Below, in pieces: positions 1,337-44,677 of a stretch of 64,000 bases of DNA (the stretch's first letter is position 1; the number at the start of each line of letters is the position of its first letter). The notes under the pieces are model-generated. The model ran no database searches and was not told where the DNA came from. It saw nothing but the letters and a program-made list of their open reading frames with translations. The position numbers were made by a program, and so were the translations under genes. The stretch covers positions 62,001 through 126,000 of the forward strand of contig NW_027271515.1 of assembly GCF_040938485.1 (NCBI RefSeq). The letters are read 5' to 3'. The DNA is from Diadema antillarum (lineage: Eukaryota).

Positions 1337-1821
1337 AGGAATACGGCATAGTATTGGTTGTGGTGAGGATTCAGCTTTTAACTTTTGGTGAGATATTCAA
1401 AAACCACTATATAAAAATGTTAAAAAGCACGCAATTCTAAAAGGAATTCAAAGTTTAATTGATGAAAATCGGTTTTAAAAATGGCTGCGACATTCACAAA
1501 GTAAAACAAAGCGATTCTAATAAAATGTGGGTCCCACCTTCTATTATTGTTTTGGATATCTCAGCTATTGCAAAACCAATATCTATCAAATAACATTTGA
1601 ATTCATTTCAGCATTGTACGCTTTTTCCTATTTCATAAAAAGTTNNNNNNNNNNNNNNNNNNNNNNNNNNNNNNNNNNNNNNNNNNNNNNNNNNNNNNNN
1701 NNNNNNNNNNNNNNNNNNNNNNNNNNNNNNNNNNNNNNNNNNNNNNNNNNNNNNNNNNNNNNNNNNNNNNNNNNNNNNNNNNAACCTGAAGTCTTATCTC
1801 AGTCAAAACATTACCATCCCT
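1337..1821. mobile_element. Kolobok-like non-autonomous DNA transposon (MITE) spanning the gap
   Basis: Starts TTAA|AGGAATA and ends ATCCCT|TTAG. Has an internal inverted structure centred on TGTGGGTCCCACCTT. Similar to the copy at 47205-47600. Confidence 0.6.
1645..1782. other. Assembly gap (N run)
   Basis: Run of N; it falls inside a MITE. Confidence 0.99.
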
Positions 1822-2264: not shown

Positions 2265-2895
2265 GTAAGTACTTCCGGTAGCCGTAACAGCCCCTCGGAC
2301 GGCAGCATGTTATTTATTCCTGTGTTTTCCAAAAGTGTTTTTACAATATGGAAGGCAAAACTGCTGTAATAAAGAAAGTTGTCAATTTAATGTTATTACC
2401 AGGGATTACATAATATGGAGGTGTTAATGGAAATCTTTTCATCACAAATTGACCGACGAGGGAGGGTTTGGGTACTTTATTGCATTAAAATTATCAGTTA
2501 TAAGCTTCTTTTTTTGTTGGGGGATCAATTCTGAATTTAGTTTTTAATTCTTGTCCCTTATTACTGAAAGTCATCATTTTATTATTGAGAGTCTAGAACA
2601 TTATGAATGAACTTGCAATATCTGTTGCATGTAACCATAATGCTTTGTTTGATCCTAAGCTTAATTTGGACGAAGTGAAAGTATTTTGAAGTCATCGCGG
2701 GTAGGTGTATTGCAAGAAACTATTTTAATGAATATCGAAAGGCGCTACTTGTTGACGTCAATTAAGGAAGAGATGGCATCTTTGTTTTTGTTTTTTGTTT
2801 TTGGAAATCCCAACCATAGAATAAGATATGCAAAGATTTGGTAGGTGTCTTATGTATGATCTAACCCTTTTTGCTTTCCCTTTTAATAACTATAG

Positions 2896-4703: not shown

Positions 4704-5095
4704 CTATGCTAGACGTTATATACCGATCCTGTTTTGGCCATTGACAAACAGTGTTCTTCTTGGACATTCATTTAAGCCCTGGATTGTACATCTTTCTGTG
4801 AATGGGTGTGAGTTCAGCGTTCTGCTCAACTTCCGCTTACTAGAAACGATATTTTCATTGAACTGACGTGGCCATCATATTCAACTCCACTGGAAAAATC
4901 TATGCTAGACCTTTTACCGATCCTGTTTTGGCCATTGACGAACAGTGTTCTTATTGGACATTCATTTAAGTCCTGGATTGTACATCTTTCTGTGAATGAG
5001 TGTGAGTTAAGCGTTTTGCTCAACTTCCGCTTATTGAAACGATATTTTCATTGAACTGACGTGGCCATCATATTTCCATAACTCCGCTGGAAAAG
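4704..5095 (+). repeat. Direct tandem duplication, ~196 bp x2, just downstream of SRCR gene 1
   Basis: CTATGCTAGAC...CCGATCCTGTTTTGGCCATTGAC... starts at 4704 and again at 4900 with few differences. Confidence 0.9.
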
Positions 5096-7698
5096 TCGAG
5101 CCTGAAGTCTTTTCAAATCTTGCGCTTACGCCTATCTGAAATTCAAGATTGTCCGAGTGCGGAAATTAGCACAGAAACACACAGCCCCTGTAGAGGGTCG
5201 ATTAAAGTAGCCAGGACTTGGGTATCAAGCCTGACCTTTGTACCCAAGAACCGGAGGATGGTGGGCTCAAAATGTCCTGTGAACACTTACGTTGACTTAT
5301 GTTTTTCCCATGCTCCCCTACTTATCTCCAGCCTGGACAATGATTAACCACGAGTTTACTTTTTCTGGAATAATTCAAGATAACATACGTTGTACTGGCC
5401 TACATTGCACTTTCATCTTCAACGTGTTATCTAATGCTTTGGTCAGGGTTAATCATTGGCAAAATGAATCTCCACACCATATCAATAGTTCGAGAAGAAC
5501 CACGGTCACGATATACATATACATATAAATTATATATAGTGACAGCAATGGACTAAACTTAAACATGGTGGGGCGGTGTAGGCAATATATACCTATAAAA
5601 AGTGTGTATTATCTATTTATTTAATGAGACAGGAATTAAACCATCTTATCTTCTGAAGAAGTAATGATGGCATTCGTTATCACAAAAATACACACAGGTC
5701 AGACTTACGTGTGCCACGTGTGGCACCCATTTCTGCAAAGGCCTTCTTGAAGAATGCGAAATTCACACCACTGCAGACTACGCCTCGTTTTCAAGCAAGT
5801 GCATCGTTTTACTGGTTGAGTTCAACTTAGAAAGAGCGAGTACAAAGTTGTGGGAATATCGTCCTCCGTCCAACCATGATTACCGGACAGATCAATCCTG
5901 TGTTGTATTCAAACGTTCATTTCAGAAATTTCATATCTTCACACATGAAGTTTTCTGCTCCCACTAGATATTCAAGGATTTTGCTCTCTTTTTTGTGCAG
6001 GATCAGTCAGGTTGAGGATAACAGCAACTTCACCTTAAAAGGTGTCTGTGATGAAATTCACTTATTTATCTATCTATGTTTTCTTTAAAAGAATGGTTGC
6101 TTCATTTAGAGCCACAAAGGCCTGCTGTACAAGGGATCGAGCCTTACGTATAAACGTTACAAAATAAAATACGGACTTACAAATAGTATTACTCACAAGT
6201 AACATATATATACAAATGGAAAATAAATCAAAAAGATATGAAAACATACAACATAATAAAAGTGGTGGTCATTTACAAATTAATAGTGAAATCAAAAGAT
6301 AAACTGGTGATGCCGGAGGAGTTTCTTGAAAATTTGTGAAGGGGATGATTGAACGGAAATTGGTAATGAATTGAACATTTTACTGATGGAGTATGAGAAA
6401 GAACGTTTTTTGTTGTGTTTTTGGCTTAGGTAAGTATAGCTGATTCTTTAGGATATGTTTAGTATGTTATGGTTATGTTATGTCTGGTATATGTATGTTT
6501 TATTTAGTTATTCTCAGCGTTATTATATAGTATTTCCGTTATCATAGAAATTTGTTGTATATTACAGTTTCAAAGCCAAGCATAACAAAGTAAACACCTT
6601 TCAAAAACTTGGCCTATGAATCAACTCGTGTGAATCACAGCCGGTTTCTATTTTGCCTATCATTGCCTAATAAGCAGACGATATAATTCCAAATATAAGC
6701 ATAATAATATAATGTATAGATTGATTAAAATGTTTCTTGTATAACTTAACATATCATGTGAGTTATGTTCCGTATTTATGGGATTGCTATCATTTTTTGA
6801 TCTGTAGATGTTTTTACATACATCTACATGTATTTGATAATCACATAGTGGATGTGAAAATGTATCAGGAAAACTTGCTATACATGTTATACCTGTAGGC
6901 CTACATGTCATATTCAATCTGCCATGCCATGATGTGCTGACGTATATTACTGATCAAAACGTTTTCATGGATGCTAGTTTTCAGGCAAAGGTCTGATGTA
7001 TTTCAGGCCCTCTCTTTCATTCTAAATGGCATCCTATGTTTTAAGCATTTTTTTTTTCTGTGTGTGTGTGTAGGATCAACTATAGAGCAATGTCATAATT
7101 GCAATCTAATTGACCAAAATCATCCATATGCAAATAGAAGATTGATGAATTTGAATGACAAAGTGTCAACGCTATTACGTATTTGGAATCTAATTACAAA
7201 ATTCTTGAAGTAGAAGTTTTATATCACGCTTTAACTTTATTCAGTTCTCATCAAAAGAAAATCTTAATATGAACATGATTTATGATGCAGTTATAGTGCA
7301 GTGCACGCATTCTCATTTAAGCTTCGCAAGAGGCGAGAATGGATGATGTTAATGTCTAGGCACACGTTTTCATGAATAAATGTATGAATTTGAATATCAT
7401 ATGATCAATTTTAATTTTCTTCTCAATTATAGTTAGGATATAACTTTCGAAGAAAGAAAATCGATGAATGATGAGGTGTATTGATCCAGGAAGAGTCATG
7501 GATTTGAATGTCATGTATTTATCAGTAAGTCGTCCTGAGCAATATACAATTTTGTTGACGTATCAGAGGTAATCATAAAAGATCATTGCTGGAAGCTTGC
7601 AAAACACATTCATTTTTAGATTCATGCTTAGATAGATATAAAGCCTCGTCACCATCTCAAGACATAAATCCATACGCCACAAATGCATGCATGCATAC

Positions 7699-20479: not shown

Positions 20480-20961
20480 GTACGTATTTTTCCCCATAAT
20501 ATTCATTTACTTCCATTCAAATGATACCAAAAACAGCAATTCAATTTAGTATTACTGTACAACGTGTAATATAAATAGTTCTTTTAGTAACATATTTTCG
20601 AACTAGGAAATAGAAATTAAAAAATGTAACTGTTGATACACACAATTTAAGTTAACGAAGATAACAACTGAGACACACATTTACCTCAATAACAAATGGA
20701 TCGAAAATAGTACAGAAAATTACCAACAAAAAAAAGCTATTTTATCTAAATTTCATTTTATGTCATAATCAATACCATCACAAAACAACTCCCCTTTACA
20801 TCTGCTCCTGATAATATACTTTTACAATAGTTATCCAAAACATTAAAAACCCTCCATGTATCTTCACCTCCCCTCCCCTTTAAATTACAAATATCAGACA
20901 GGAGTCTGTCATTGCTCGTGATGTCCTATTCCCATCCTCACCCCGCGCCTCAGTATTACAT

Positions 20962-30900: not shown

Positions 30901-31937
30901 CAGTAAAACAAAAGTGATTATCAAATATACTAGCAGCGGTGATGCCTCCAATTTTCACTTCTTCTTTTCGTTGTTGTTCATGGAAACATAATTTGCAAAG
31001 CTGAATGCATAACATTACCATCAATGACCATGGCATTTGGTCAATGAAATTTATTCAGGTCGGATCAGAGTTGTAGGAACGAGGTCAGATTAATCATCAA
31101 CAAAACGGGTAAAGTCACACACTCCGCGGGCTTTCAGTTTATCGTACTGTAGTATGTGTTTTACGCATGCAGTGTTTGTATTCATATGGCACGGGATGAG
31201 CTGCTGCGTAGCTGTTACACACATACACACAAACACACGCACATCCTCTTGGCCTTACACAGTTGGGGCTGTTAGGGCACACTCGTAAGCTCCTATGTGA
31301 ATCCGACCGACCGACCTCATCCTACTTTACCCACTCATTGATCTCGTGTACGTGTGTGTAGGGGTGTGTGTGTGTTGTGTGTGTGTGTGTGTGTGTACGT
31401 GCGTACTGTACATAGCTGTAGTAGTAGCGTGTTATCACATACACACAGTAGTGAGTATGCTAGACCTTTGATGCTATGCTAGCGCAGCGTACCCACCGTG
31501 TGTATTGAAAGACTAGCAAAGAACCTCGTAAAAAGAAGTACGCTGTACCAGCAGTGGCGAGGAACGTTGTTTTCGAGCTTATTTTGAATGCCTTCCGTCG
31601 AACTATGTCTCTTTCATGAAGGATTAAACATTGACCGAGAAGATGGTCTTGATCCTGGACTTAGTGGCTCTACTGGCCACAAACAAAACAATATCCTTTG
31701 GGGCACTGTAATTGAACGACGTCGTCAAGAGGAAAAGCAAAGCCGAATGTACGAGACAGAGCAAATTGATCGCAAACGATCGGGCAGTGAGACCATTGGC
31801 AGGCAGCCCAAGCCCATCGCTGGTTGTGAGCGAGAGTATGAACTTGACGGTACGTTGTTGATTAGATCTGTTTTACCCGAAACTTTGTGTAACAGATACC
31901 CTACTTATCATCTCATAATAGCTTGTTCAGCAAGCTC

Positions 31938-34271
31938 ATGGCCACTCCAAATGAGGTCGACGAGTTCCATGATTCTCAGCAGTGGTGTCCGTTGTGCTCC
32001 GAGCGCATAACAGACCCCAAAATATTGCAATGTTTGCACAGTTTCTGTCGGCCTTGTTTGGAAAAACGTGTTGCTGAGCCAGATCGTGTCAAATGCCCGG
32101 TTTGCATGCATGAAACATCACTCGGTGATATGGGACTGGATGGTCTCACCTCTAGTATCCTCATCAACAATATCCTTGATGTTGTTAGCAGTCATGATGA
32201 TGAATTGGATGGCAGAATGTTTGGCAGTGCAGAAAACCACAGGCGACAGTGCAGCTCCTGCGAAGAAGGTCAGATTGCTACGAGGGTGTGCAAGGACTGC
32301 AGTGAGGCTCTGTGTGAAAGTTGTGTCCTAGCTCACCAGCGTGTGCGCCTCACGAAAGATCACACCATTGTGTACTTGGAAGGGGTAAATGGCAGCAGAC
32401 CTCATGCCAAGGTCCCAATGCTCTATCCCTACCATCAGTATGGCCTTGGGTACCAACCTCCGAAGATGCAACCTGTCTCAGACAGACCACCAAGCTACTG
32501 TGATATCCACAAGGAGATGCTCCGTCTGTATTGCGACACCTGTTACAAGGCCATCTGTCGAGAGTGCACCATGGTAGAGCATAGTGGCCACAGCGTAGTC
32601 TACCTCCAAGATGCTGTTCAAGATAGCAAAGCCATGACCATGCGCATGCTGAATGATGCCAAAGCCAGCTCCAGAGCACTGCAGGAAAGCTTAGCCCACA
32701 CACAAGCAATGGCAGAAAGAGTTGAGATCAGGTGCCAGGCTGTGGCGTCTGAGGTGCGCTCAAATATCCGTCGGCACAAAATGGCACTGGATGAGAGAGA
32801 GAGGGAATTGCTGCGCAAGGTTGAAGTCATTCGGCAAGTAAAAAGCAAATCTCTTCATTCGCAAGCTGATGATATCCAACAGGCAATGGAGAGCTTGACA
32901 GAGTGTATGGGAACTGTTGAGAAAGCTCTTGACTCGGGCACAGATGTGGATGTCCTGAAAACAAAAGAAAAGATCACATCTGAGATGCGTACACTGAAGA
33001 GTCTGAGGGGCTATCTCCAGCCTCAGGAAGATGATGGGATCTTCTTTACTCCACCTGATAGTGTCCTGCACACTGCCATACTATCAATGGGATACATCAG
33101 CAGTAGTGCTTACCCCCCAAATTGCTTTGCCACTGGTGATGGATTGAAGCGTGCCTTGGTTGGAAAGATTGCTTCTTTTATGGTTCACTCTAAAGATCAC
33201 AACAATGAACCGAGATGTGTAGGCGGAGAGGTCTTGGAGGTGACAGTACGTGGGCCAGACGGGGTCTTGTACCCAGCAGAAGTCATCGATCAACAAAATG
33301 GCACATACCTGGGCAGCTATCGACCTACACTCGAAGGACAGCATTACCTGTCAGTTACCATCAAGGGGAAGAATATCATGGACAGTCCATTTGTTATCAC
33401 AGCACGAAATGCACGCAACTTCACCACCATTGGTCCAGCCCTCATGACTTTCGGAGGTGAAGGAGAAGGAGATGGACAGCTTTGCCGACCTTGGGGGATT
33501 GCTGTTGATGCTGATGGCCGTATCATCGTGGCAGACCGCAGCAACAATCGCATCCAGATATTCAACTCAGATGGCTCCTTCAGTCATAAGTTTGGCTCAC
33601 CAGGAACGCGTAATGGACAATTTGATCGCCCAGCAGGAGTTGCAGTTAGTGGTGAAGGCAACATCATCGTGGCAGACAAGGATAATCACCGCTGTCAAGT
33701 CTTCACTGTGCAGGGCCAGTTCCTTTTCAAGTTTGGTGAGAAGGGGAGTAAGAATGGCCAGTTCAACTATCCCTGGGATGTTGCAGTGAACAGCGAGGGG
33801 AAAATCCTGGTTTCAGACACCCGGAACCACAGGATTCAGCAGTTCAACCCAGATGGTACTTTCATCAATAAGTTTGGCTTTGAGGGAGCACTGTGGAAGC
33901 ACTTTGATTCGCCCAGAGGGGTGGCATACAATAATGATGGCCACATAGTTACTACCGACTTCAACAACCACCGTTTGGTAGTGATTCATTCTGACTTCCA
34001 GTCTGCACAGTACCTTGGCTCTGAGGGAACCAACAATGGCCAGTTTCTGAGACCTCAGGGAGTGGCTGTGGATCAGGAGGGCTATATCATCGTTGCCGAC
34101 TCGCGTAACCATCGCATTCAAGTATTTCAGCCAAATGGCAGCTTTTTGTGTAAGTTTGGCATGCCAGGTACAGGCTCTGGGCAGCTTGATCGCCCATCTG
34201 GTATTTGTGTATCTCCTGATGGTGTCATACTGGTTGTAGATTTCGGAAACAATCGTGTGCAAGCATTCTGA
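31938..34271 (+). CDS. TRIM71: E3 ubiquitin-protein ligase TRIM71 / lin-41 (RING, two B-boxes, coiled coil, filamin, six NHL repeats), intronless CDS, 777 aa
   Basis: RING CPLC...CLHSFC..C...CPVC; B-boxes CSSC...C..C...C..C...H...H and CDIH...C..C....C..C....H..H; filamin ATGDGL...; NHL repeats QLCRPWGI, QFDRPAGV, QFNYPWDV, HFDSPRGV, QFLRPQGV, QLDRPSGI. The segment FGFEGALWKHFDSPRGVA matches TRIM71 as I recall it. First in-frame ATG is at 31938, after an in-frame TAA at 31890. Confidence 0.97.
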   Translation: MATPNEVDEFHDSQQWCPLCSERITDPKILQCLHSFCRPCLEKRVAEPDRVKCPVCMHETSLGDMGLDGLTSSILINNILDVVSSHDDELDGRMFGSAENHRRQCSSCEEGQIATRVCKDCSEALCESCVLAHQRVRLTKDHTIVYLEGVNGSRPHAKVPMLYPYHQYGLGYQPPKMQPVSDRPPSYCDIHKEMLRLYCDTCYKAICRECTMVEHSGHSVVYLQDAVQDSKAMTMRMLNDAKASSRALQESLAHTQAMAERVEIRCQAVASEVRSNIRRHKMALDERERELLRKVEVIRQVKSKSLHSQADDIQQAMESLTECMGTVEKALDSGTDVDVLKTKEKITSEMRTLKSLRGYLQPQEDDGIFFTPPDSVLHTAILSMGYISSSAYPPNCFATGDGLKRALVGKIASFMVHSKDHNNEPRCVGGEVLEVTVRGPDGVLYPAEVIDQQNGTYLGSYRPTLEGQHYLSVTIKGKNIMDSPFVITARNARNFTTIGPALMTFGGEGEGDGQLCRPWGIAVDADGRIIVADRSNNRIQIFNSDGSFSHKFGSPGTRNGQFDRPAGVAVSGEGNIIVADKDNHRCQVFTVQGQFLFKFGEKGSKNGQFNYPWDVAVNSEGKILVSDTRNHRIQQFNPDGTFINKFGFEGALWKHFDSPRGVAYNNDGHIVTTDFNNHRLVVIHSDFQSAQYLGSEGTNNGQFLRPQGVAVDQEGYIIVADSRNHRIQVFQPNGSFLCKFGMPGTGSGQLDRPSGICVSPDGVILVVDFGNNRVQAF

Positions 34272-34277
34272 AGTAAA

Positions 34278-34285
34278 TACGGGTA
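34278..34285 (+). promoter_or_regulatory. miR-100/99 8mer seed match (TACGGGTA)
   Basis: Reverse complement of miR-100 nt 2-8 plus A. Only 6 nt past the TRIM71 stop, so efficacy may be reduced. Confidence 0.4.
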
Positions 34286-35774
34286 CTTGAAGTAGGCCTT
34301 TTGTGTTACGAGGTCTGAAGTATTTTATTGGAGGATAATTCCGGGCTTGTGATATCCCCACTTTCGTTTGCATCATATGCCTGTAACACTCTAAAATGTT
34401 GTGTTTGTGTGTAAATTAAAGTGCTCAAAGCAAAGTGTTTAACATTCTCTGACTCAAACTTCCAGGCAGGTTAGCAATTATGATCTGATCAACAATGATA
34501 TGCGGGTACTCAAACAATGATGAGATGTTATTTTTCTGCTACATATCTGCCCTTCATCAATTGAATTGTAATGGCGTTGCAGTTTTATTCTGGCAATTTT
34601 AGGAAAATGAAATAGAGTTTCATCTTGAACAAACTCCTCATTCTGTGTACAAACTGTATGTTTGTGTATACCATGACCTGCACTAAGGCCATCTTGTTCC
34701 GTTTCAAGTACAAGTCTTGGGTTATGAGGATTGCTTTAATATTATGTGCTTATTGTGATTTATGGTAGACAAAAATACAAAGGCTTGCTGCGCATTCGAA
34801 GTATGGGCAAAGAGTTTCCTTGTTACAATTAAATGACTGGAAACGGCTTCTTTTTATCTTTTCAAATTCAGTGTCAGGCCATAACATAATGAACAAGAGA
34901 GACACATAGCGCTTTATGCTCAGCTGAGTGTAACTTTATATGCTGTTTCACATATTGGCCAACTGGTGCAGTAGGCTTTTGCTTGAATACCAGGCATAAG
35001 AACTCGTCATTTTAGCTGGCATCAGTGTTGTGTTGAGATACCAGAGCATCAGTCCAGAAAATGACAAGTACAGACATAATCTGCTGTGTCTGGCATAGTG
35101 TTCCTGCTCTATAAGCCTACTCTCTTTGTGCTGTGCATTATACGATACAAACCGAGCAGATGTTTATCAATTTGATGTGTAAAACGAAAACGAGTACCCA
35201 ACTACAGTGTAACTTATGGATTTAATAGCATGAAATGAGTTTCATATACACTGTTCATTGAAATTAGTAGGGGTTTTTTGTTGGTTTTTTTTTAATGGTT
35301 GTTCAGTGCGACTTGTGCATTTTTTTTTTGTCAAAATGATTGCATAATACATTGAAAAAATGTTGTGCTTTTGTATACCTTAGTTTGCCCTGAAGGCAAT
35401 ACTCGACCCAGACTAACTATTTTCTTAAGATGACATGCTTTGCCTTGACAAACTGCTTGCACTGAATACATCAGATAGTGCATTCACACCACCATCACTA
35501 ATTAGCCAGTTTCAGGCTTCATTTCATTTTGTTACCAAATCTTAAACAATCCTGCTTTCTGAGCATACAGTACATTGTACGTGTTGAAAATGACTACATA
35601 CATTGTACAGTCATCAAAGGGCATGCCCATGACAAGAGTTGATTTATTTATTGTTTCCCCCTTTTTTTAATTTAGTTTTTATTTTGACTGAAAGGGTAAG
35701 GGTTGAAAGGAAGGAGATGAGATTTCTTGATGTGGTTGACCACTCCCAATAACAAACATGGCTGCGCTTGGTAT

Positions 35775-35807
35775 CTACCTCAATGTGATTTGGTGTGCTC
35801 TACCTCA
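35775..35807 (+). promoter_or_regulatory. Tandem let-7 8mer sites (CTACCTCA at 35775 and 35800)
   Basis: Two perfect 8mers 25 nt apart, 1.5 kb downstream of the TRIM71 stop. lin-41/TRIM71 is the classic let-7 target. Confidence 0.8.
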
Positions 35808-36561
35808 AGAAGAAGATTACATGTGGTTCAAGATTTCTTTGTCCACGTCTCAGGTTCAAGAATGATGAAGTGATTGTAAATTGCTTATAAAACATGCATG
35901 TGTTGTAGATTACGAGGTAAATTGTTTATCCTTGAATTGAAGGAAAAAACTGTACAAACTTGCAGCTGCATTTACTGATATTATATGATGAACAGGCTTC
36001 AAGTGCAAAGCATTTTGTTGCCATCGCTTGATTAAAAATGCAAATTTATATTATTTAGATATAATATTCATTTATATGTATTGTGACTTAGCAAAAAAAA
36101 AGAGTAAATTGTTGTGCAGGGATTTGTGTGGGTTCATTTTAGTTGGGCATATAAATGTGAAAATATTAACTACAATAGTAAAGTTTTGCTGTCATTTTGG
36201 ATGTTACTCCCCAGTTGTTACTTAGTATTACCATATAAACCTCTCATTGTCATAGACAATTTAAATTTTTTGTATTGAGCAATGCAACAGAATCCTGAAT
36301 ATTGTACAGCTAGCTTCATTTTCAGCTAATCCAAGTGGCGTTACTGCTGACAATATAAAGCTGTATTACATGTGAAATGTTTTTCATACCAAGTCTTGCA
36401 GCAGTTACATTGTATATGATTTGATTATTGTGTGCATGCATTATATATAAATGTGGCTACCAGTTGCACATTGTTTGATACAGTGTTGTACATGTACCAA
36501 CCACATTTGTAAAAGTTGGAGGCACTTTTATTTCATTCTTCAGGTTTATCAGTTTGTTATG

Positions 36562-36569
36562 CTCAGGGA
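36562..36569 (+). promoter_or_regulatory. miR-125/lin-4 8mer seed match (CTCAGGGA)
   Basis: Perfect 8mer in the putative TRIM71 3' UTR. Confidence 0.55.
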
Positions 36570-37956
36570 TGCCTTTTTAACTGATAATGCTCCCAATGAA
36601 ATCTAAGCTATTATTGCAGAGGGAGCCTAAAATGTAACACTAAATGTTTCTTTTAGTTGAAATATGCCACATTTTCTAACATTATGCTGACTTTGCCAAA
36701 GATGATGTAGTATTAGCTGCCAAGGGAAATATACTGCAGCCTGAGTTAAAATACCTTAACTGTCCACTGTAAGATGTAAGGTCACATTTGTTTATTTATT
36801 TGTTTGTTTGTTGCAGTTACCTTTCTTAATTTCATCAACATTATTGCCCACTCATTCACAGCTTTGACATTTTGTTTTAGCGATCCCTCCAGTATTTAGT
36901 GAGCTCAGTCGGTGTGCATAATTGTTTACCATATTATTCAAATTGTGTTTTTGCAGTGATACTGTGTGTTTGCATGATGATTATGAAATACCCCACTTTT
37001 GACAGTACATGTACCACGTCGAAGCATGTTGGTCCAGTCAGGCTTTCCATATAGAGTTATTTTGTTAGGCATGTAAGTTGTAAAATGTCATTGTTTGAGC
37101 CCTCAAGATTTTCTGCACATCGTATACGCCTTAGACCCAGTTAGCGAGGGGATTCAAGAGTAGCAGCTCAATTAATTCGCCACCCACCCAAGTACATTAA
37201 AAAAACCACAGATAGTACCGGTCTGCAAAAACAGTATGTGTATCGGAGCTTAAAGGATATTAAAAGACATTTTTTAAAGCCAAAACTATACGATCCCTTT
37301 AAATGCTCATTAGTAATGGTTGACTCTCGACACTCATTATTCTTTGGCCATTTGTGTACAGTGTAGGCCTACTTACACAGAGATCAGTGATTACACAGAG
37401 AAAGTACACTTTTGTAGTACCCAATTTGTTACAGATATTCTCGAATACACCCAAGCTGGGCCAGACTTTTCTCCGTGGTATCCCCATGTTACCAGGTCTT
37501 TAAAGCCACTTCCCTGAAAATCACATAACTCCCATTTTTGTTGTTGTTGTCCTTTTGTTTTTTAAGTGTGTTTACACGTATGTAACTGCCACACTGCTAC
37601 AGTGAAGATTCATTGGTTTTGAAGCACAGCAGAATATGATAACAGGAGGCTTATGATCGTAAGTATGGAATGAGGCATGACTAATCTTGGATCATGGGGA
37701 AATTGGCTGATGTCACTATAATAACAAGCCTAGGGTATAGTTAGTCCTAAACTTTTGAATTTGATTCAAAATAGATTTAACTTTTATCACGTCTATCATT
37801 TACCACAATGCACCGTAGTTCCATTATGTTCCAAAGTGTGCTCTCTGAAGGGCCTCCTATACATTGTACGTGTGAAATGTGAAATACTGCAGATGCTGAA
37901 ATTTCACAGAATTTAAAAGAAAAGATTTTGTACATCCTCCCACAATCAAAATGATA

Positions 37957-37959
37957 ATA

Positions 37960-38007
<48 letters not shown>

Positions 38008-38110
38008 TAAATATAATCGTAATCATAATCATAATCATAATGTATAATATAATAATAATAATAGTAATAATATAATACAATAATGATAATAATAATAATA
38101 ATAATAATAA
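37957..38110. repeat. (AAT)n microsatellite
   Basis: Long imperfect AAT/AATC run. Confidence 0.95.
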
Positions 38111-38860
38111 AGAATAATGATAATGAAGAATTGAATAACCTCCTAAGATATCAGGTAAAATATCGGGTACAGTGTATGAAGTACAACTCTATAAGAGAAC
38201 TGCAATGTATGTGTACATTCAACATGGCCTGGCAGGCAGCAGCTGCACACAGTTGCCCATCCTGCTGTGTGTACATGTATGCAAGCCTACATGCATGTTT
38301 AGTAATGGGAGCTGTATGGTATCCGCATTCCTGATCACAAATATAACCACCTGCAAAACTGATTTAACAACTCACAATTCGCAATTTTTCTTGTAATTTT
38401 TTTTTAAATTTTTTTTTGCATCTACAGTAATCACCAAGGCATACTGGTTTCCTAATTATCAATAGCTAAGAATGTAGAGGCCATTGCCTATCTCTGACTA
38501 CCTTGCCACAATTAATTCATAAAGAGGGGTGGAGATGGGGAGTCTGTCTCAAGTTTTTGCGTTTCATGAGACTGGGATCAGTTGCGGGATGTTATGTGTT
38601 CCAAAGCCACCAACAGTCATATTCAGGGCATGTTATGTAGTTGGAGGTGAAGTTTTGTTTTAAATCATTACTCCTTAAGTCACTCCCTTCAGTGTACCAG
38701 ATCACATCTGAAAACAGCTGAATAACTTATGTTAACTCTTAATTAAGTTCGAAACTACCGATGTGAGAAGTAGAAGTAATGAGGATTCCTTGATTTCCTC
38801 AGCATGAAAAGGTCAGCTGGCCTTGTGCTGCAATGCTGACTATGCTGATAGCAGGCATTT

Positions 38861-38868
38861 CTACCTCA
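38861..38868 (+). promoter_or_regulatory. let-7 8mer seed match (CTACCTCA)
   Basis: Third perfect let-7 8mer downstream of TRIM71. Weaker matches at 40079 (7mer-m8) and 40264 (7mer-A1). Confidence 0.55.
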
Positions 38869-41414
38869 AGACTCAGTATTACCAGTACACCTCAAATCCT
38901 GTTTTTTTTTCCCCATCCTGTTTTCCACCAAGCTAGTTGTATTATCTATGCGATGAATTAACAGATCTATTCGTGATTTGAGTGATATCATCTCTGAAAT
39001 AGAACAAACTCTCATTGGTAGCTTGATTGCATACAATTTTAGGAACAAGTCCTCGATTCATAGGATGTATGACACACGGACTGCAATTTCAGTTGCCATA
39101 TAAGCACAAAAACACATTAAAAGGATGGCATCCTCCTTCTCATTCATCATCAACATCAAATAGTCTTTATCTCATGCTTTCACAATAAGGCACAAACTGC
39201 TTTTTAACTTTCTATAAACCAAGATTATTAGAATTTTTGTGATTGCATAAAGAGAAAATGGGTAGTTTCAATCACAAAATGTTTAATTACAGTGCAGATA
39301 CACTGTATGTCCATCCTAACGTACACATTACAGTAAATTAATAGAAATAAGAATTTCTGTAAAAATTTGCTCAGGTTTGATTGAACACAATACAAATTGT
39401 ACCATCAGCATCAAGGAGACTTTTTTTCCTTACTTTTTTGAAGTCATATGCCAATAAAGATGCCAAATAACTGACACCCAGCATGAATAAGATTCAGGCG
39501 ACATAAGACTATAAACTCAGTAAACATTTACATACACTCATTGACTCATGCTGTGTATACTGCCTGTATACACGTATGTTGTGTCATTTAGTTATTTAAC
39601 TGACTCAATGCATTTGGGGTATCAAAATGTCATCAATATTTTATGAAAGTATAGTACAGTTTGATTAGATGTGTGTTTAATGAATTGCCTTCATAATTCA
39701 AATGTTTGTTTACGGTTCAAGGAGTCTTTTTTGTGTTCTGACCAATTTTGGTTCGTTTCATTTCACACAATGTACACAGCACCTCCTGCACAATTTCCTT
39801 TTCTTTTGTATGCCTTTGTCATTATTATTGTATGCATTATTCAGTATTTGTAGAGTGCACCCAGTTCATGTATAATGTTTAATGTCTGGTCAGGTCAATC
39901 AAATCATATTGGTATATTTGTGAAAGACGTGCTGCAGGAGAAGGGATTTGTGGGTCTGTCCCTATCATTTTAGATCTCTTTAACATCTAGACGTCTAGTT
40001 GCTCACCTCATACACCTAAATGTTTATCTTGTATATGAAATTGTTAATTAGAGATTGTCTGAATTTGCAATTGTTGTGCTACCTCTGAAAAAAATGACAG
40101 CTTTTTAAAAAGAATGTCAATATATTCATGTTCAGTGTGGTAATGTAATGAGAGTATTTGAATTTCTAAGAAATGACTTTTAAAAATGATGTGTATATCC
40201 ATGTTATATGTGTATCGTGATCTGAGGTGCAAAGTTGTGTAGATTGACTGGGAGAAGAGACTTTACCTCAGACACACACTGGTAAAAGAGACAGGAAACT
40301 ATTATCTCAGGCTAAAACTCTAAGGTAGTCATACCACAAAGAAATACAGTTGAAGCAAAGCTTATGTGCTGTTGTGTGCTAGTAATACCGCAAACAGTCT
40401 AAGACTGATGTGCTCAGTTTTCAACGTTTCATGCATGTATCTGCTGTCATTGCTCTAAGCAAGATGGGTGAAAAAAACCCAGCTGCCTACGCCATAGTGT
40501 CGCCTTCTGTGCTTGCAATGTAAAACAGCGCTTGCTTCAAAGTATACCCCTCACTCTTGTTCCTGCCATGTTATATGCTTCAGGTTTGCTCAGTAAGAGG
40601 AAAAAGTGTTGTGATGTTGTTGTGTTTTTTATATGAAATGCTGCAAGAGTGATTAATACAGGGTGCCATTCCTGTTGTGAACATGCTTATGTTTTGTTTG
40701 ATTTATTTCCTAGTTTGCTACATGTATGTTGAATGAATACAGTAACTTTCTTTGGAGCAGTCTTATTGCTTGTTCTGAAATATCTAAACAGCACCTGATT
40801 CTGTGTATGGCACAATGATTTTCTGGCTTTGAAATAGTCCTGATACAGATCCAAAATGGATGACAGATTCCAAACTCAGTATATAGTCCTTTGATAATGA
40901 GTAGATTTATTTCTTTTGATTGAATTTGTGATTTGTAAGACTAATGCTGCAGGGTGCTAGAATTTCTTCAGGCCCAAATAATGAATGTAAGTTTGTAAGT
41001 TGTGACCTCATTCGCAGAGACTTACATTGTATCTACCATGGTGCATGTATGCTTTAAGTTTGTCTGTTTTTTATCAGAGAGAAGCTGTTTCAAAGTGCAT
41101 AGTATGCGGCTGTTCTGTACAAAATCAAAACCAAACTGATTCACCACTTCCTATGGGGCTGCAGCAATGTGTATTGGTATACTTTAACATCAGTGAGGGG
41201 TTGATGGTGTTGTTGATTATATCTCTTTTCTTTGTGTTTTATTGGCATGGGTTCACATGGTTTCTTAGAAGATTCTGGGTTCTCCAGAAATGATGAAACA
41301 TCACCTTCTTTCCATTCTATTTGTAATACTGAAGGATCATTGCACTAATACAGTTAGAGCATATATTCTTATTTGCCCTTTAAAATATATAATTTCTTTC
41401 ACATGAATCTGACA

Positions 41415-41422
41415 TACGGGTA
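41415..41422 (+). promoter_or_regulatory. miR-100/99 8mer seed match (TACGGGTA)
   Basis: Second perfect miR-100 8mer, about 50 nt upstream of an AATAAA. Confidence 0.5.
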
Positions 41423-41465
41423 TAATACAAAGAGAACAGCAAACAGATAAAGAATCAATATTTGT

Positions 41466-41475
41466 ATTAAATAAA
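41466..41475 (+). terminator. Candidate distal poly(A) signal of TRIM71 (overlapping ATTAAA/AATAAA)
   Basis: ATTAAATAAA. Other AATAAA at 39453 and 43004. The site actually used cannot be determined from sequence. Confidence 0.4.
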
Positions 41476-41724
41476 GAATGTAGCATGTGAACATGAACTT
41501 AAGGGGCTACCTCTGCTGTTTACACAGCAACTGGTAAGTGACATCTCATAGCAGCTGGTACAGGTATTACTCATTTTAACTCCATCGTGTTTTCAGAACA
41601 CTTGACGTTGTGCAGTATTCAAGTCATCAAGCCAGTAACGTACTGGTAGCCAAAGTGGTTCAGGAAACTTACAATTCGTAATGGAACAATGTTAAGGCAG
41701 TTGTTTGAGAAGGGCATGGGTAAA

Positions 41725-42001
41725 CAGGAGCCGCGGAACTTTTTTGGGGGTAGGGGGCTGTGGACTGGGTGTGTGTGTCATGGGTAAATGGACCCCATCC
41801 CCCCCCCCCCCCCCAAAAAAAAAACCGACTATCATGGACATATACCTTCGGAAAGTATAGGGTGTTGCGATTTTTCCCCTGTTCTTCTGTCCCTCGTCCC
41901 CCCCCCCCCATATGTGTGGTTTTTTTGTTGTTTTTGTTGTTGTTTTTTGAGACCCCAAAAGTGTGTGACACTGCCCATGCCCTATGGTTCCGCGGCCCCT
42001 G
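41725..42001. mobile_element. hAT-like MITE with 5-bp TSD (GTAAA)
   Basis: CAGGAGCCGCGGAAC ... GTTCCGCGGCCCCTG, flanked by GTAAA on both sides. Confidence 0.85.
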
Positions 42002-42241: not shown

Positions 42242-44677
42242 AAGTCATAGAGATAATGTCAGCATCTCAGTCCACCAACAGTATTTTGTATTTGCTCTTC
42301 CTGCTCTGAAATCAAGTAAGAAATCGGATCAATCCTGTGGTCAAACCGCCGAGTTACCCTTGCACTTGAAACAGCCTCTTGTGTGTGAATGTAGCAGCAG
42401 CATCATGACCTTTTCTTCTATTGTGATAAATGTATGCACAGCTACAATTATGTTCTTAGGAATTTGCAATAATGCATTCTGAGCATGGTATGGAAGATTA
42501 GCAGTAATGAGTGATTTCTAGAGTATTGACTTAACCATGAAAGTAATTAATATGATTTAGCATTGACCGTGAGGAATTTTTCTTTGTACGTGTAGAAACA
42601 TCATTCATGGCATTTAAAAATCATGTTCTCTGTATTCCGACTGCAACCTGGTGGTTGTAGAATCCAGATAGCATTTGATATTTGATATTCTAGGGGAACA
42701 CTGAAGTTACTCAGTTTTGCCCTTTAATCATAGTATGACAGATGTTCCAGCAATTTCAAGTCATAGTATTGACACTCATTAGATACAGAGACTTGGAAAA
42801 TGCAGTGGCAATGGCGTTCATGTTACTGTGGTCCAGAAAATGTTAGGTCTATGCATTAATTCAGAACTAGGATGTATTTTAAAACTTGTGACTGTAAGTA
42901 GCTATACCAGTAGGAAAAATGATTACCGGTAGTTCATTCACCATCATAAATTGATTATATTTCATTTCATTGCATTTGTTGTTGCACAGTTTCATTGAAT
43001 GAAAATAAATGTTGAGAATGGCACCAACATTTGTTGTAAAGTTTTATTCTTTCTGTCCTTCAGGTAACTATCTTACAATCCTGAGAGTGTCAAATTGTAT
43101 GTGGCAAACAGCAAAAGTCAAAACAGAAAGGCAAAACAGAAACACATTTTTTGTCTTCAGTTGTCGCACATAGCTGGTACGTTGCACAACGTCATTGGCG
43201 ACAAGATTGATTCCCACTCTTGGCACATTCCGTATTTGTTATGACACGTTGACATAGCTGGCAAAGTTTAATTCCTCTAGAGAAACGTAAATTGATGTTG
43301 ATATTGGTGAGATTCCTCTATTGTGTACAATCAGGAAGCGTTTGTTGATGTGAGCTACAAGTAGATCTGTTTTCATGAGTTAGCTCTGAGAAGACTGGTT
43401 ATTTCAAGAATGTGCTGATGTTTTCTGTGTAAATTGGTTAATTTTTGAAGCATCTGACAGTGAGGCTGGGCTGTGTTGTCTGTTGTGTATTAAAATCAAT
43501 TGGATTCTAAAGTACAGTATGCTATATATTTAGCATGTCTAATTTGTGCAAATTTGGACTTCCCGACAATTTCATGAGTGGTTTAATTGTGTATCAGTTC
43601 ACACGGGTAGGCATTCCCAGATACTGTTTACATGTACTGTGTACTGCATACCAGTACATATGCATGTGGGCATGTATGTTGCATTCATGTCAATGTTAAT
43701 ATTTTTGTGTATTGTTAATAGTTGTGAATAGCACCCGATTCACAAAATTTGCAAACGTATAAAACTGCAAACATGGTGTATACAGTCTTGGTGATTGGCC
43801 ACCACATTTGGGGTTATTTTCAGCTACATTTTCATGTCGTCTTCTCCTATCTCTGCAAATTTCCCTTCTTTTCTCTTCTTCCATTTACCTTCACACTTCC
43901 CCACCCTGTCAAAAAGAGATATGTATCGGTACACTGAGTATTTTGCCAGCAAAAAGACTTGAGAGATACAGGTAGATAGAAATTATAGTGGGATAGAAAA
44001 ATGCATACATGTGGGCACCATGCAGTGTTTCTTGGAATCATAAGCATTTGATAAATACATGTACAAAATGTGCATTATGTGTACATCCATCGGCATGCTG
44101 AGATGTGTTGATGTACTATGTACACACGACTATCACTGACGTTACATGTGCTCACATATCGACATAGTATAGGAAGTCCAGGCTGAACTCCAGGCAGTGT
44201 GGTTGCTGATGAGATCAGGGAGGTGAATGCACTGCCATGCTACACAAATGTGTTACATCAGGGAGCACCTCCCTGGTTACATGCAGTGTGTTGGGTTGGC
44301 TGCATGTACCAAAGCGTAGTGTTGCACACTCAATGTACGTTCCATTTATATTATACTGGTACATATTTCATGTGATTCCATTTAACAATCACTTGTTCCT
44401 CTCGGCCATATCCAGCATGTATTGCAAACACTGTATCATCGTGAAGTTCCGCGGTGTTGGTCATGTCACGCAGGGGAACCTCTTTGTTTTACCACAGTGA
44501 ATGACTCTGATCAGGGAATTGCATCATATTACATAACAGCTTGCTTGCCCTTTGATTCCCTGTATCTTCTGAGGACTACAGCCCCAGTTGGTTGGGCTGC
44601 TAATTCTAAAGCATGATGAATATTTGCTGAAGGCAAAATGGGCTCTGAGCCAAAGAATTTCCTTTTCCTCTACTTAA

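Follow-up and report, generated by a model that had tools for sequence, protein, structure and literature searches.

MiR-100 is the oldest animal microRNA, and most bilaterians keep it in physical linkage with let-7 and miR-125; to our knowledge, few conserved targets of it are agreed on. Its two cluster partners act on the mRNA of lin-41/TRIM71 through seed sites in the 3′ untranslated region (UTR), as in Caenorhabditis elegans (let-7 and lin-4/miR-125; sites LCS1/LCS2) and in vertebrate TRIM71. Here, we describe miR-100-family sites on the lin-41 orthologue of the sea urchin Diadema antillarum, which lies in a 64,000-nucleotide (nt) stretch of contig NW_027271515.1 (positions 62,001 to 126,000 of the forward strand; hereafter, the window). 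A first-pass annotation of the window did not know miR-100 as a standard lin-41 regulator, but there is work on this pairing in mammals: experiments with mimics, inhibitors and luciferase fragments showed that human miR-99a-5p reduces TRIM71 (PMC8962266), a study of germ-cell tumours described TRIM71, without a reporter, as targeted by miR-100 and miR-125b together (PMC11977657), and three prediction databases agree on mouse Trim71 as a target of miR-100-5p (PMC12158875). The pairing of this microRNA family with this gene is not new. A further relative is the let-7-Complex of Drosophila, two of whose co-transcribed members, let-7 and miR-125, act on one developmental-timing mRNA, chinmo (PMC4979967); fly miR-100 is not known as a co-regulator of that mRNA, whereas urchin lin-41 has conserved sites for all three microRNAs.

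How does the urchin locus compare with these systems? Like the lin-41 genes of C. elegans and vertebrates, it has a close let-7 pair and a miR-125 site in its UTR, all of them conserved, yet it differs in that miR-100 (miR-2003 in urchins) has a conserved 8mer of its own, TACGGGTA, placed right against the stop codon and not in the UTR body. The seed family and the target are those of miR-99a/miR-100 and TRIM71 in human and mouse; the sites themselves may or may not be homologous, and we treat conservation among ambulacrarians as a separate observation. In bowfin, the one vertebrate sampled, the sole match is a 7mer-m8 at +5826, with none close to the stop. Among open-access papers and preprints, we found none that deals with microRNA sites in the lin-41 of echinoderms or hemichordates, and the conservation of a stop-adjacent site in ambulacrarians appears to be unreported. 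We consider it likely that the proximal TACGGGTA is a genuine, anciently selected site of the miR-100 family in a lin-41/TRIM71 UTR of ~8.7 kilobases (kb), a second, distal copy being lineage-specific. Regulation of lin-41 mRNA by this family thereby appears well supported by conservation.

The gene upstream of the sites encodes a predicted protein in which Pfam recognises a RING domain, two B-boxes, a filamin repeat and six NHL repeats. A LIN-41/TRIM71 orthologue is expected to have these domains along with a coiled coil, and TRIM71 as its nearest relative; the protein conforms to this description. Among solved structures in the PDB, TRIM71 scores best (6fpt, 595 bits), ahead of Thin/TRIM32 (240 bits) and TRIM2/3 (<190 bits). 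The protein is 99% identical to a TRIM71-like protein of Diadema setosum and 55–99% identical to TRIM71 of many phyla, and it clusters at ≥90% with proteins of Strongylocentrotus purpuratus and Lytechinus. Judged by these comparisons, the gene is a single-exon TRIM71/lin-41 orthologue, as the first-pass annotation had called it. Its stop codon is a TGA at 34269–34271, and the DNA 3′ of it is 85–94% identical to the D. setosum locus.

An exact search of the window found TACGGGTA at 34278–34285 and 41415–41422, both on the + strand, with no further match on either strand. The motif has the letters expected of a miR-99/100-family 8mer, namely the reverse complement of seed nucleotides 2–8 (ACCCGUA) plus an A opposite nucleotide 1, and both sites have this canonical form in full. 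Mature sko-miR-100, pmi-miR-100 and spu-miR-2003 all start with AACCCGUA (Kadri 2011 supplements, PMC3247247). The earlier count of exactly two miR-100 8mers in the 64 kb, and the naming of the motif, thus hold up. By itself, the count is not significant: dinucleotide shuffles contained the motif 0.57 times on average, and 16 of 100 had it at least twice. The case therefore rests on the orthologues. Beyond the seed match, we saw no convincing 3′ supplementary pairing at nt 13–16 for either site. Local folding is not unusually stable at either one (z = 0.19 for the proximal and 0.00 for the distal site, relative to shuffles), and a structured RNA element at these positions was rejected on these grounds; an Rfam search of the window returned no RNA family.

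For comparison, we took the genomic loci of TRIM71 orthologues, each with 10 kb of downstream DNA, from nine ambulacrarians: four sea urchins (the window species included), a sea star, a brittle star, a crinoid and two acorn worms. An 8mer near the stop is present in all nine, at +1 to +14 in the echinoderms and at +78 and +101 in the acorn worms (Table 1), and the sequence flanking it cannot be aligned between classes on either side. When all 8-mers of the UTR's first 120 nt were tallied across six lineages, with the four urchins required to agree, TACGGGTA was the only one present in 6/6, the best unrelated 8-mer reaching 2/6; a first-order Markov model expects it 2e-4 to 6e-4 times per 120 nt in each lineage. 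Its reverse complement does not occur in any of the nine 10-kb flanks. In S. purpuratus, the site is contained in each of the nine transcript contigs that hold the gene, and the upstream part of at least one of these is non-contiguous in the genome, as in a spliced mRNA. As the sole shared 8-mer, kept in 9/9 ambulacrarians, the proximal motif stands above background conservation. On this comparative evidence, it is likely to be an anciently selected site, one that echinoderms and acorn worms have kept for ~500 million years.

Is there a microRNA to read it? Kadri et al. 2011 reported no miR-100 in S. purpuratus (PMC3247247). Hertel et al. 2012 described a diverged urchin mir-100 orthologue, located in the mir-100/let-7/mir-125 cluster and filed as spu-mir-2003 (PMC3384580). 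Its mature form, sequenced from embryo and adult, starts with AACCCGTAAGG (PMC3247247) and is identical to miR-100 at nt 1–8, while the miR-100 of the sea stars (pmi-miR-100 and that of Henricia) and sko-miR-100 are canonical (PMC3247247). With these seed-identical mature sequences, all three groups, urchins, sea stars and acorn worms, have a partner for the site. The microRNA locus itself lies outside the window. The data establish directly that the motifs are present, that the gene is an orthologue, that the proximal site is conserved and that the urchin microRNA has the seed of miR-100.

Could both sites be chance matches without microRNA function, as might arise in a long, AT-rich UTR? The unremarkable count in the window and the lack of conservation of the distal copy would fit such an origin, but every ambulacrarian sampled has the proximal 8mer at the beginning of its UTR, amid flanks that have diverged, and no other 8-mer is shared in this way, at an expectation of about 2e-4 per lineage. 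Conservation across phyla effectively refutes a chance origin of the proximal site, and we give the idea that both copies are accidental hardly any credence. A more serious contender accepts that the motif is conserved and attributes this to something other than miR-100, be it an RNA-binding protein, a termination or readthrough context, RNA structure or a DNA element. Such a cause would sit well with the way the echinoderm motif hugs the stop codon, where microRNA sites are expected to be weak, and with the conservation, in urchins, of the adjoining ~300 nt (73%). Yet the distance to the stop ranges from +1 to +101, which leaves no fixed termination context, and the letters kept are exactly the match to nt 2–8 and the A opposite nt 1, with nothing around them. 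Neither the folding energy, which is no better than that of shuffles, nor Rfam lends support to an RNA element, and a microRNA with the matching seed does exist in urchin, sea star and acorn worm. We judge a cause unrelated to miR-100 to be improbable, and retain the reading of the proximal motif as a miR-100-family site.

The distal site tells a different story. At the corresponding position, D. setosum reads TGCCAGTA, with three of eight letters changed. Between the two Diadema genomes, 54% of the 8-mers of the UTR are perfectly kept (45% in the 500-nt bin that holds the distal site), and all seven of the other sites considered (let-7, miR-125 and the proximal miR-100 site) are kept in D. 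setosum; the distal site thus does not rise above background. No second miR-100 7mer or 8mer was found within 10 kb downstream of the gene in D. setosum, S. purpuratus or L. variegatus, and there is no second miR-100 site in Anneissia or the hemichordates. The first-pass annotation had discounted the proximal site, as lying in the ribosome shadow, and favoured the distal one for its AU-rich surroundings and its closeness to a poly(A) signal. The orthologues reverse this ranking, since it is the proximal site that was kept and the distal one that differs in a congener. Of the picture of two sites at the two ends of the UTR, the proximal half stands, at 7 nt past the stop, and the distal half is not borne out, with a conserved poly(A) block ~1.6 kb further on; what remains of the favourable context is AU-richness (0.77 and 0.70 in the two flanks, relative to a UTR mean of 0.63).

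The distal site might nonetheless be selected and working, a recent gain that acts together with the proximal site. It matches over all eight letters and has AU-rich surroundings, it probably lies within the transcript, and it is not the only extra copy downstream of a TRIM71 gene: Acanthaster has one at +4728 and Amphiura one at +5934, where 0.02–0.055 are expected per 10 kb. By a rough binomial estimate, three species with an extra site would arise with a probability of ~1e-3. However, the two additional 8mers are placed by genomic distance and may or may not fall within the UTRs of these species; the Diadema copy was changed in a congener that kept the seven other sites; four of the species examined, D. 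setosum, S. purpuratus, L. variegatus and Anneissia, as well as the hemichordates, have no second site at all; and a position ~1.6 kb from the probable 3′ end is deep within a very long UTR, and sites so placed are generally less effective. A working distal site is possible, but in our view doubtful. Most likely, the site is neutral or very recent and adds at most modest repression, and its importance, as a lineage-specific feature, is doubtful.

Where does the UTR end? A block around the AATAAA at 43004, with 35–60 nt of collinear sequence, is conserved in all four urchins (the D. setosum copy lies at position 20525 of its locus, L001) and is 82–87% identical by blastn to its counterparts in S. 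purpuratus (+5011..5071) and L. variegatus (+7472..7517). The true poly(A) signal is probably at 43004, giving a UTR of ~8.75 kb and not 7.2 kb. With this conserved block downstream, the distal site is probably internal to the UTR, ~1.6 kb from its end, and not beyond the real 3′ end. In line with this, contigs of a relative, from three runs, span 35901–37918 and 39435–41788, continue for 175 letters more, and cross the positions of both the distal site and 41470. By its sequence, this relative is D. setosum or very close to it, and it has the same 10-letter insert as L001. The AATAAA at 41470 was rejected as the 3′ end because it is not conserved and the relative's contigs run through it. A coverage hole at 38100–39400 coincides with a region that is 52–88% identical to D. 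setosum, below the threshold of 90%, and is uninformative. Contig depths of 18–74 from runs of <1 Gb, which are not on record as RNA, point to a probable RNA origin.

Within the UTR, a poly-C/poly-A run (41790–41825) and a repeat-rich patch (37187–37510) interrupt the sequence, and many short, loose-ended contigs of the relative pile up at 37280–37505, as they would at a dispersed repeat. About 1.5 kb past the probable poly(A) site, at 44518–44538, the window shares a stretch of 20–21 nt (TTGCATCATATTACATAACA) at 100% identity with S. purpuratus and L. variegatus; a similar sequence, TTGCATCATAT, occurs at ~34368, less than 100 nt into the UTR.

Table 1. Features of the lin-41 locus in the window, distance of the proximal 8mer from the stop codon in the other species, and inferred UTR lengths
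Feature	Position or value	Strand	Remarks
TRIM71/LIN-41 orthologue, coding sequence, single exon	31938..34271	+	open frame 31923-34271, first ATG 31938, 777 amino acids
Proximal miR-100-family 8mer (TACGGGTA)	34278..34285	+	begins 7 nt past stop (+7..+14); deeply conserved
let-7 8mer pair (CTACCTCA), 25 nt apart	35775..35807 (35775, 35800)	+	within conserved block +1481..1766
miR-125 8mer (CTCAGGGA)	36562..36569	+	within conserved block +2268..2304
Third let-7 8mer	38861..38868	+	kept in D. setosum
let-7 7mer-m8 (40079) and 7mer-A1 (40264) pair	40079..40270	+	within conserved block +5785..6191
Distal miR-100-family 8mer (TACGGGTA)	41415..41422	+	lineage-specific
AATAAA taken by the first-pass annotation as poly(A) signal	41470..41475	+	D. 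setosum: ATGAAG with 4-nt gap; not conserved
Conserved block with AATAAA (43004-43009), probable true poly(A) signal	42993..43027	+	four urchins
Proximal 8mer, offset from stop	+7		D. setosum, sea urchin
Proximal 8mer, offset from stop	+10		S. purpuratus, sea urchin
Proximal 8mer, offset from stop	+8		L. variegatus, sea urchin
Proximal 8mer, offset from stop	+14		Acanthaster, sea star
Proximal 8mer, offset from stop	+7		Amphiura, brittle star
Proximal 8mer, offset from stop	+1		Anneissia, crinoid
Proximal 8mer, offset from stop	+78		Saccoglossus, acorn worm
Proximal 8mer, offset from stop	+101		Ptychodera, acorn worm
Inferred UTR length	about 8.75 kb		window species
Inferred UTR length	about 8.2 kb		D. 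setosum
Inferred UTR length	about 5.1 kb		S. purpuratus
Inferred UTR length	about 7.5 kb		L. variegatus

The same UTR holds sites for the two other members of the cluster. The let-7 8mer pair (25–26 nt apart), the miR-125 8mer and the late pair of let-7 7mers are kept in 4/4 urchins and fall in blocks that are conserved and collinear between Diadema and the camarodont urchins; every let-7 and miR-125 site of the UTR listed in Table 1 is kept in D. setosum. The late 7mer pair has a spacing of about 165–186 nt and is also found in D. setosum, S. purpuratus and L. variegatus; its conservation implies that the UTR extends at least to 40079–40270. The let-7 8mer pair is tightly spaced in many deuterostomes, at 25–26 nt in the four urchins, 35 in Saccoglossus and 36 in both Amphiura and Ptychodera, and such a pair recalls LCS1/LCS2 of C. 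elegans lin-41. In the acorn worms, sites crowd at the start of the UTR: Ptychodera (locus L017, 12366–12444) has a miR-125 8mer at +38, a let-7 8mer at +48, the miR-100 8mer at +101 and, overlapping it, a miR-125 7mer at +109, all in the first 115 nt, and Saccoglossus (locus L016, 12334–12392) has a miR-125 8mer at +27 and the miR-100 8mer at +78.

As to the gene itself, all sampled echinoderms and hemichordates have the TRIM71 coding sequence in one exon, as do Lingula and Haliotis; the gene ranges over 13.7 kb in amphioxus (Branchiostoma) and 31.9 kb in bowfin (Amia). A miR-125 8mer (CTCAGGGA) lies within the coding sequence at 34054–34061, in the last NHL repeat, and is kept in D. setosum, as coding DNA would be. 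Of the last 30 codons, only those at −4 and −3 (GTG CAA, 34257–34262) are identical across the five echinoderm lineages compared. Together with the next letter, they give UGCAAG, which can pair, with two G-U wobbles, with the CUUGUG at the 3′ end common to miR-100 and spu-miR-2003. This is weak evidence, as amphioxus shares these codons but lacks the site.

How would a site at this position work? In the mechanism that we favour, Argonaute loaded with miR-100/miR-2003 would pair nt 2–8 with the proximal site, the final A being read in the nt-1 pocket, and would recruit GW182/CCR4-NOT, leading to repression and deadenylation of lin-41 mRNA. The site would act alongside the conserved let-7 and miR-125 sites downstream, such that all three microRNAs of the ancestral miR-100/let-7/miR-125 cluster may converge on lin-41 in echinoderms and hemichordates. 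Binding, repression and any effect of the ribosome are what we infer from these sequences. MicroRNA sites within ~15 nt of the stop are, as Grimson et al. are said to have reported in 2007, weak; the echinoderm sites, at +1 to +14, are inside this limit, and those of the acorn worms, at +78 and +101, and the distal site of the window lie beyond it. The hemichordate site is accordingly outside the stretch covered by a terminating ribosome. As the echinoderm site is within reach of that ribosome, it is probably a poor one on actively translated mRNA. Most likely, it is effective on mRNA in which translation has already subsided, and its retention in the ribosome stretch across four echinoderm classes suggests either action on untranslated mRNA or competition with the ribosome as part of its function.

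Several points weigh against reading the proximal motif as an ancient, working miR-100 site in a UTR of this length. Its placement within ~15 nt of the stop in echinoderms is where sites are known to be weak. Binding and repression at echinoderm lin-41 are predicted from sequence comparison, and the probable 3′ end is placed by conservation. The seed-matching partner is documented in S. purpuratus, Patiria, Henricia and Saccoglossus and is presumed in the window species, and the echinoderm part of the conservation sample covers urchins, a sea star, a brittle star and a crinoid. Outside the ambulacrarians, amphioxus, bowfin, Lingula and abalone have no stop-proximal 8mer, so that the site is not pan-bilaterian; miR-100 7mers within 10 kb number one each in amphioxus, bowfin and Lingula and zero in abalone, three in comparison with ~1.1 expected, which is not significant. 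The stop-near 8mer is, on this sampling, an ambulacrarian feature. Finally, the extra sites in other echinoderms suggest that added miR-100 sites may be favoured, and the label "neutral" for the distal site may be wrong.

A bolder version holds that the whole miR-100/let-7/miR-125 cluster has acted on lin-41 since at least the last common ancestor of echinoderms and hemichordates, and that in echinoderms the miR-100 site has become gated by the ribosome, serving as a latch that makes the shut-off irreversible. The site would then be occupied only once translation had been lowered, for instance by let-7 and miR-125. We regard this as speculative and, in its entirety, unlikely. If true, it would provide a conserved target in developmental timing for miR-100, the most ancient microRNA of animals. 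Independently of this version, the long retention of the proximal 8mer next to conserved let-7 and miR-125 sites suggests that joint control of lin-41 is one reason why the cluster stays together. The proximal site offers a natural test case for a microRNA site inside the ribosome shadow, and the embryos of sea urchins and sea stars are well suited to reporter and target-protector work.

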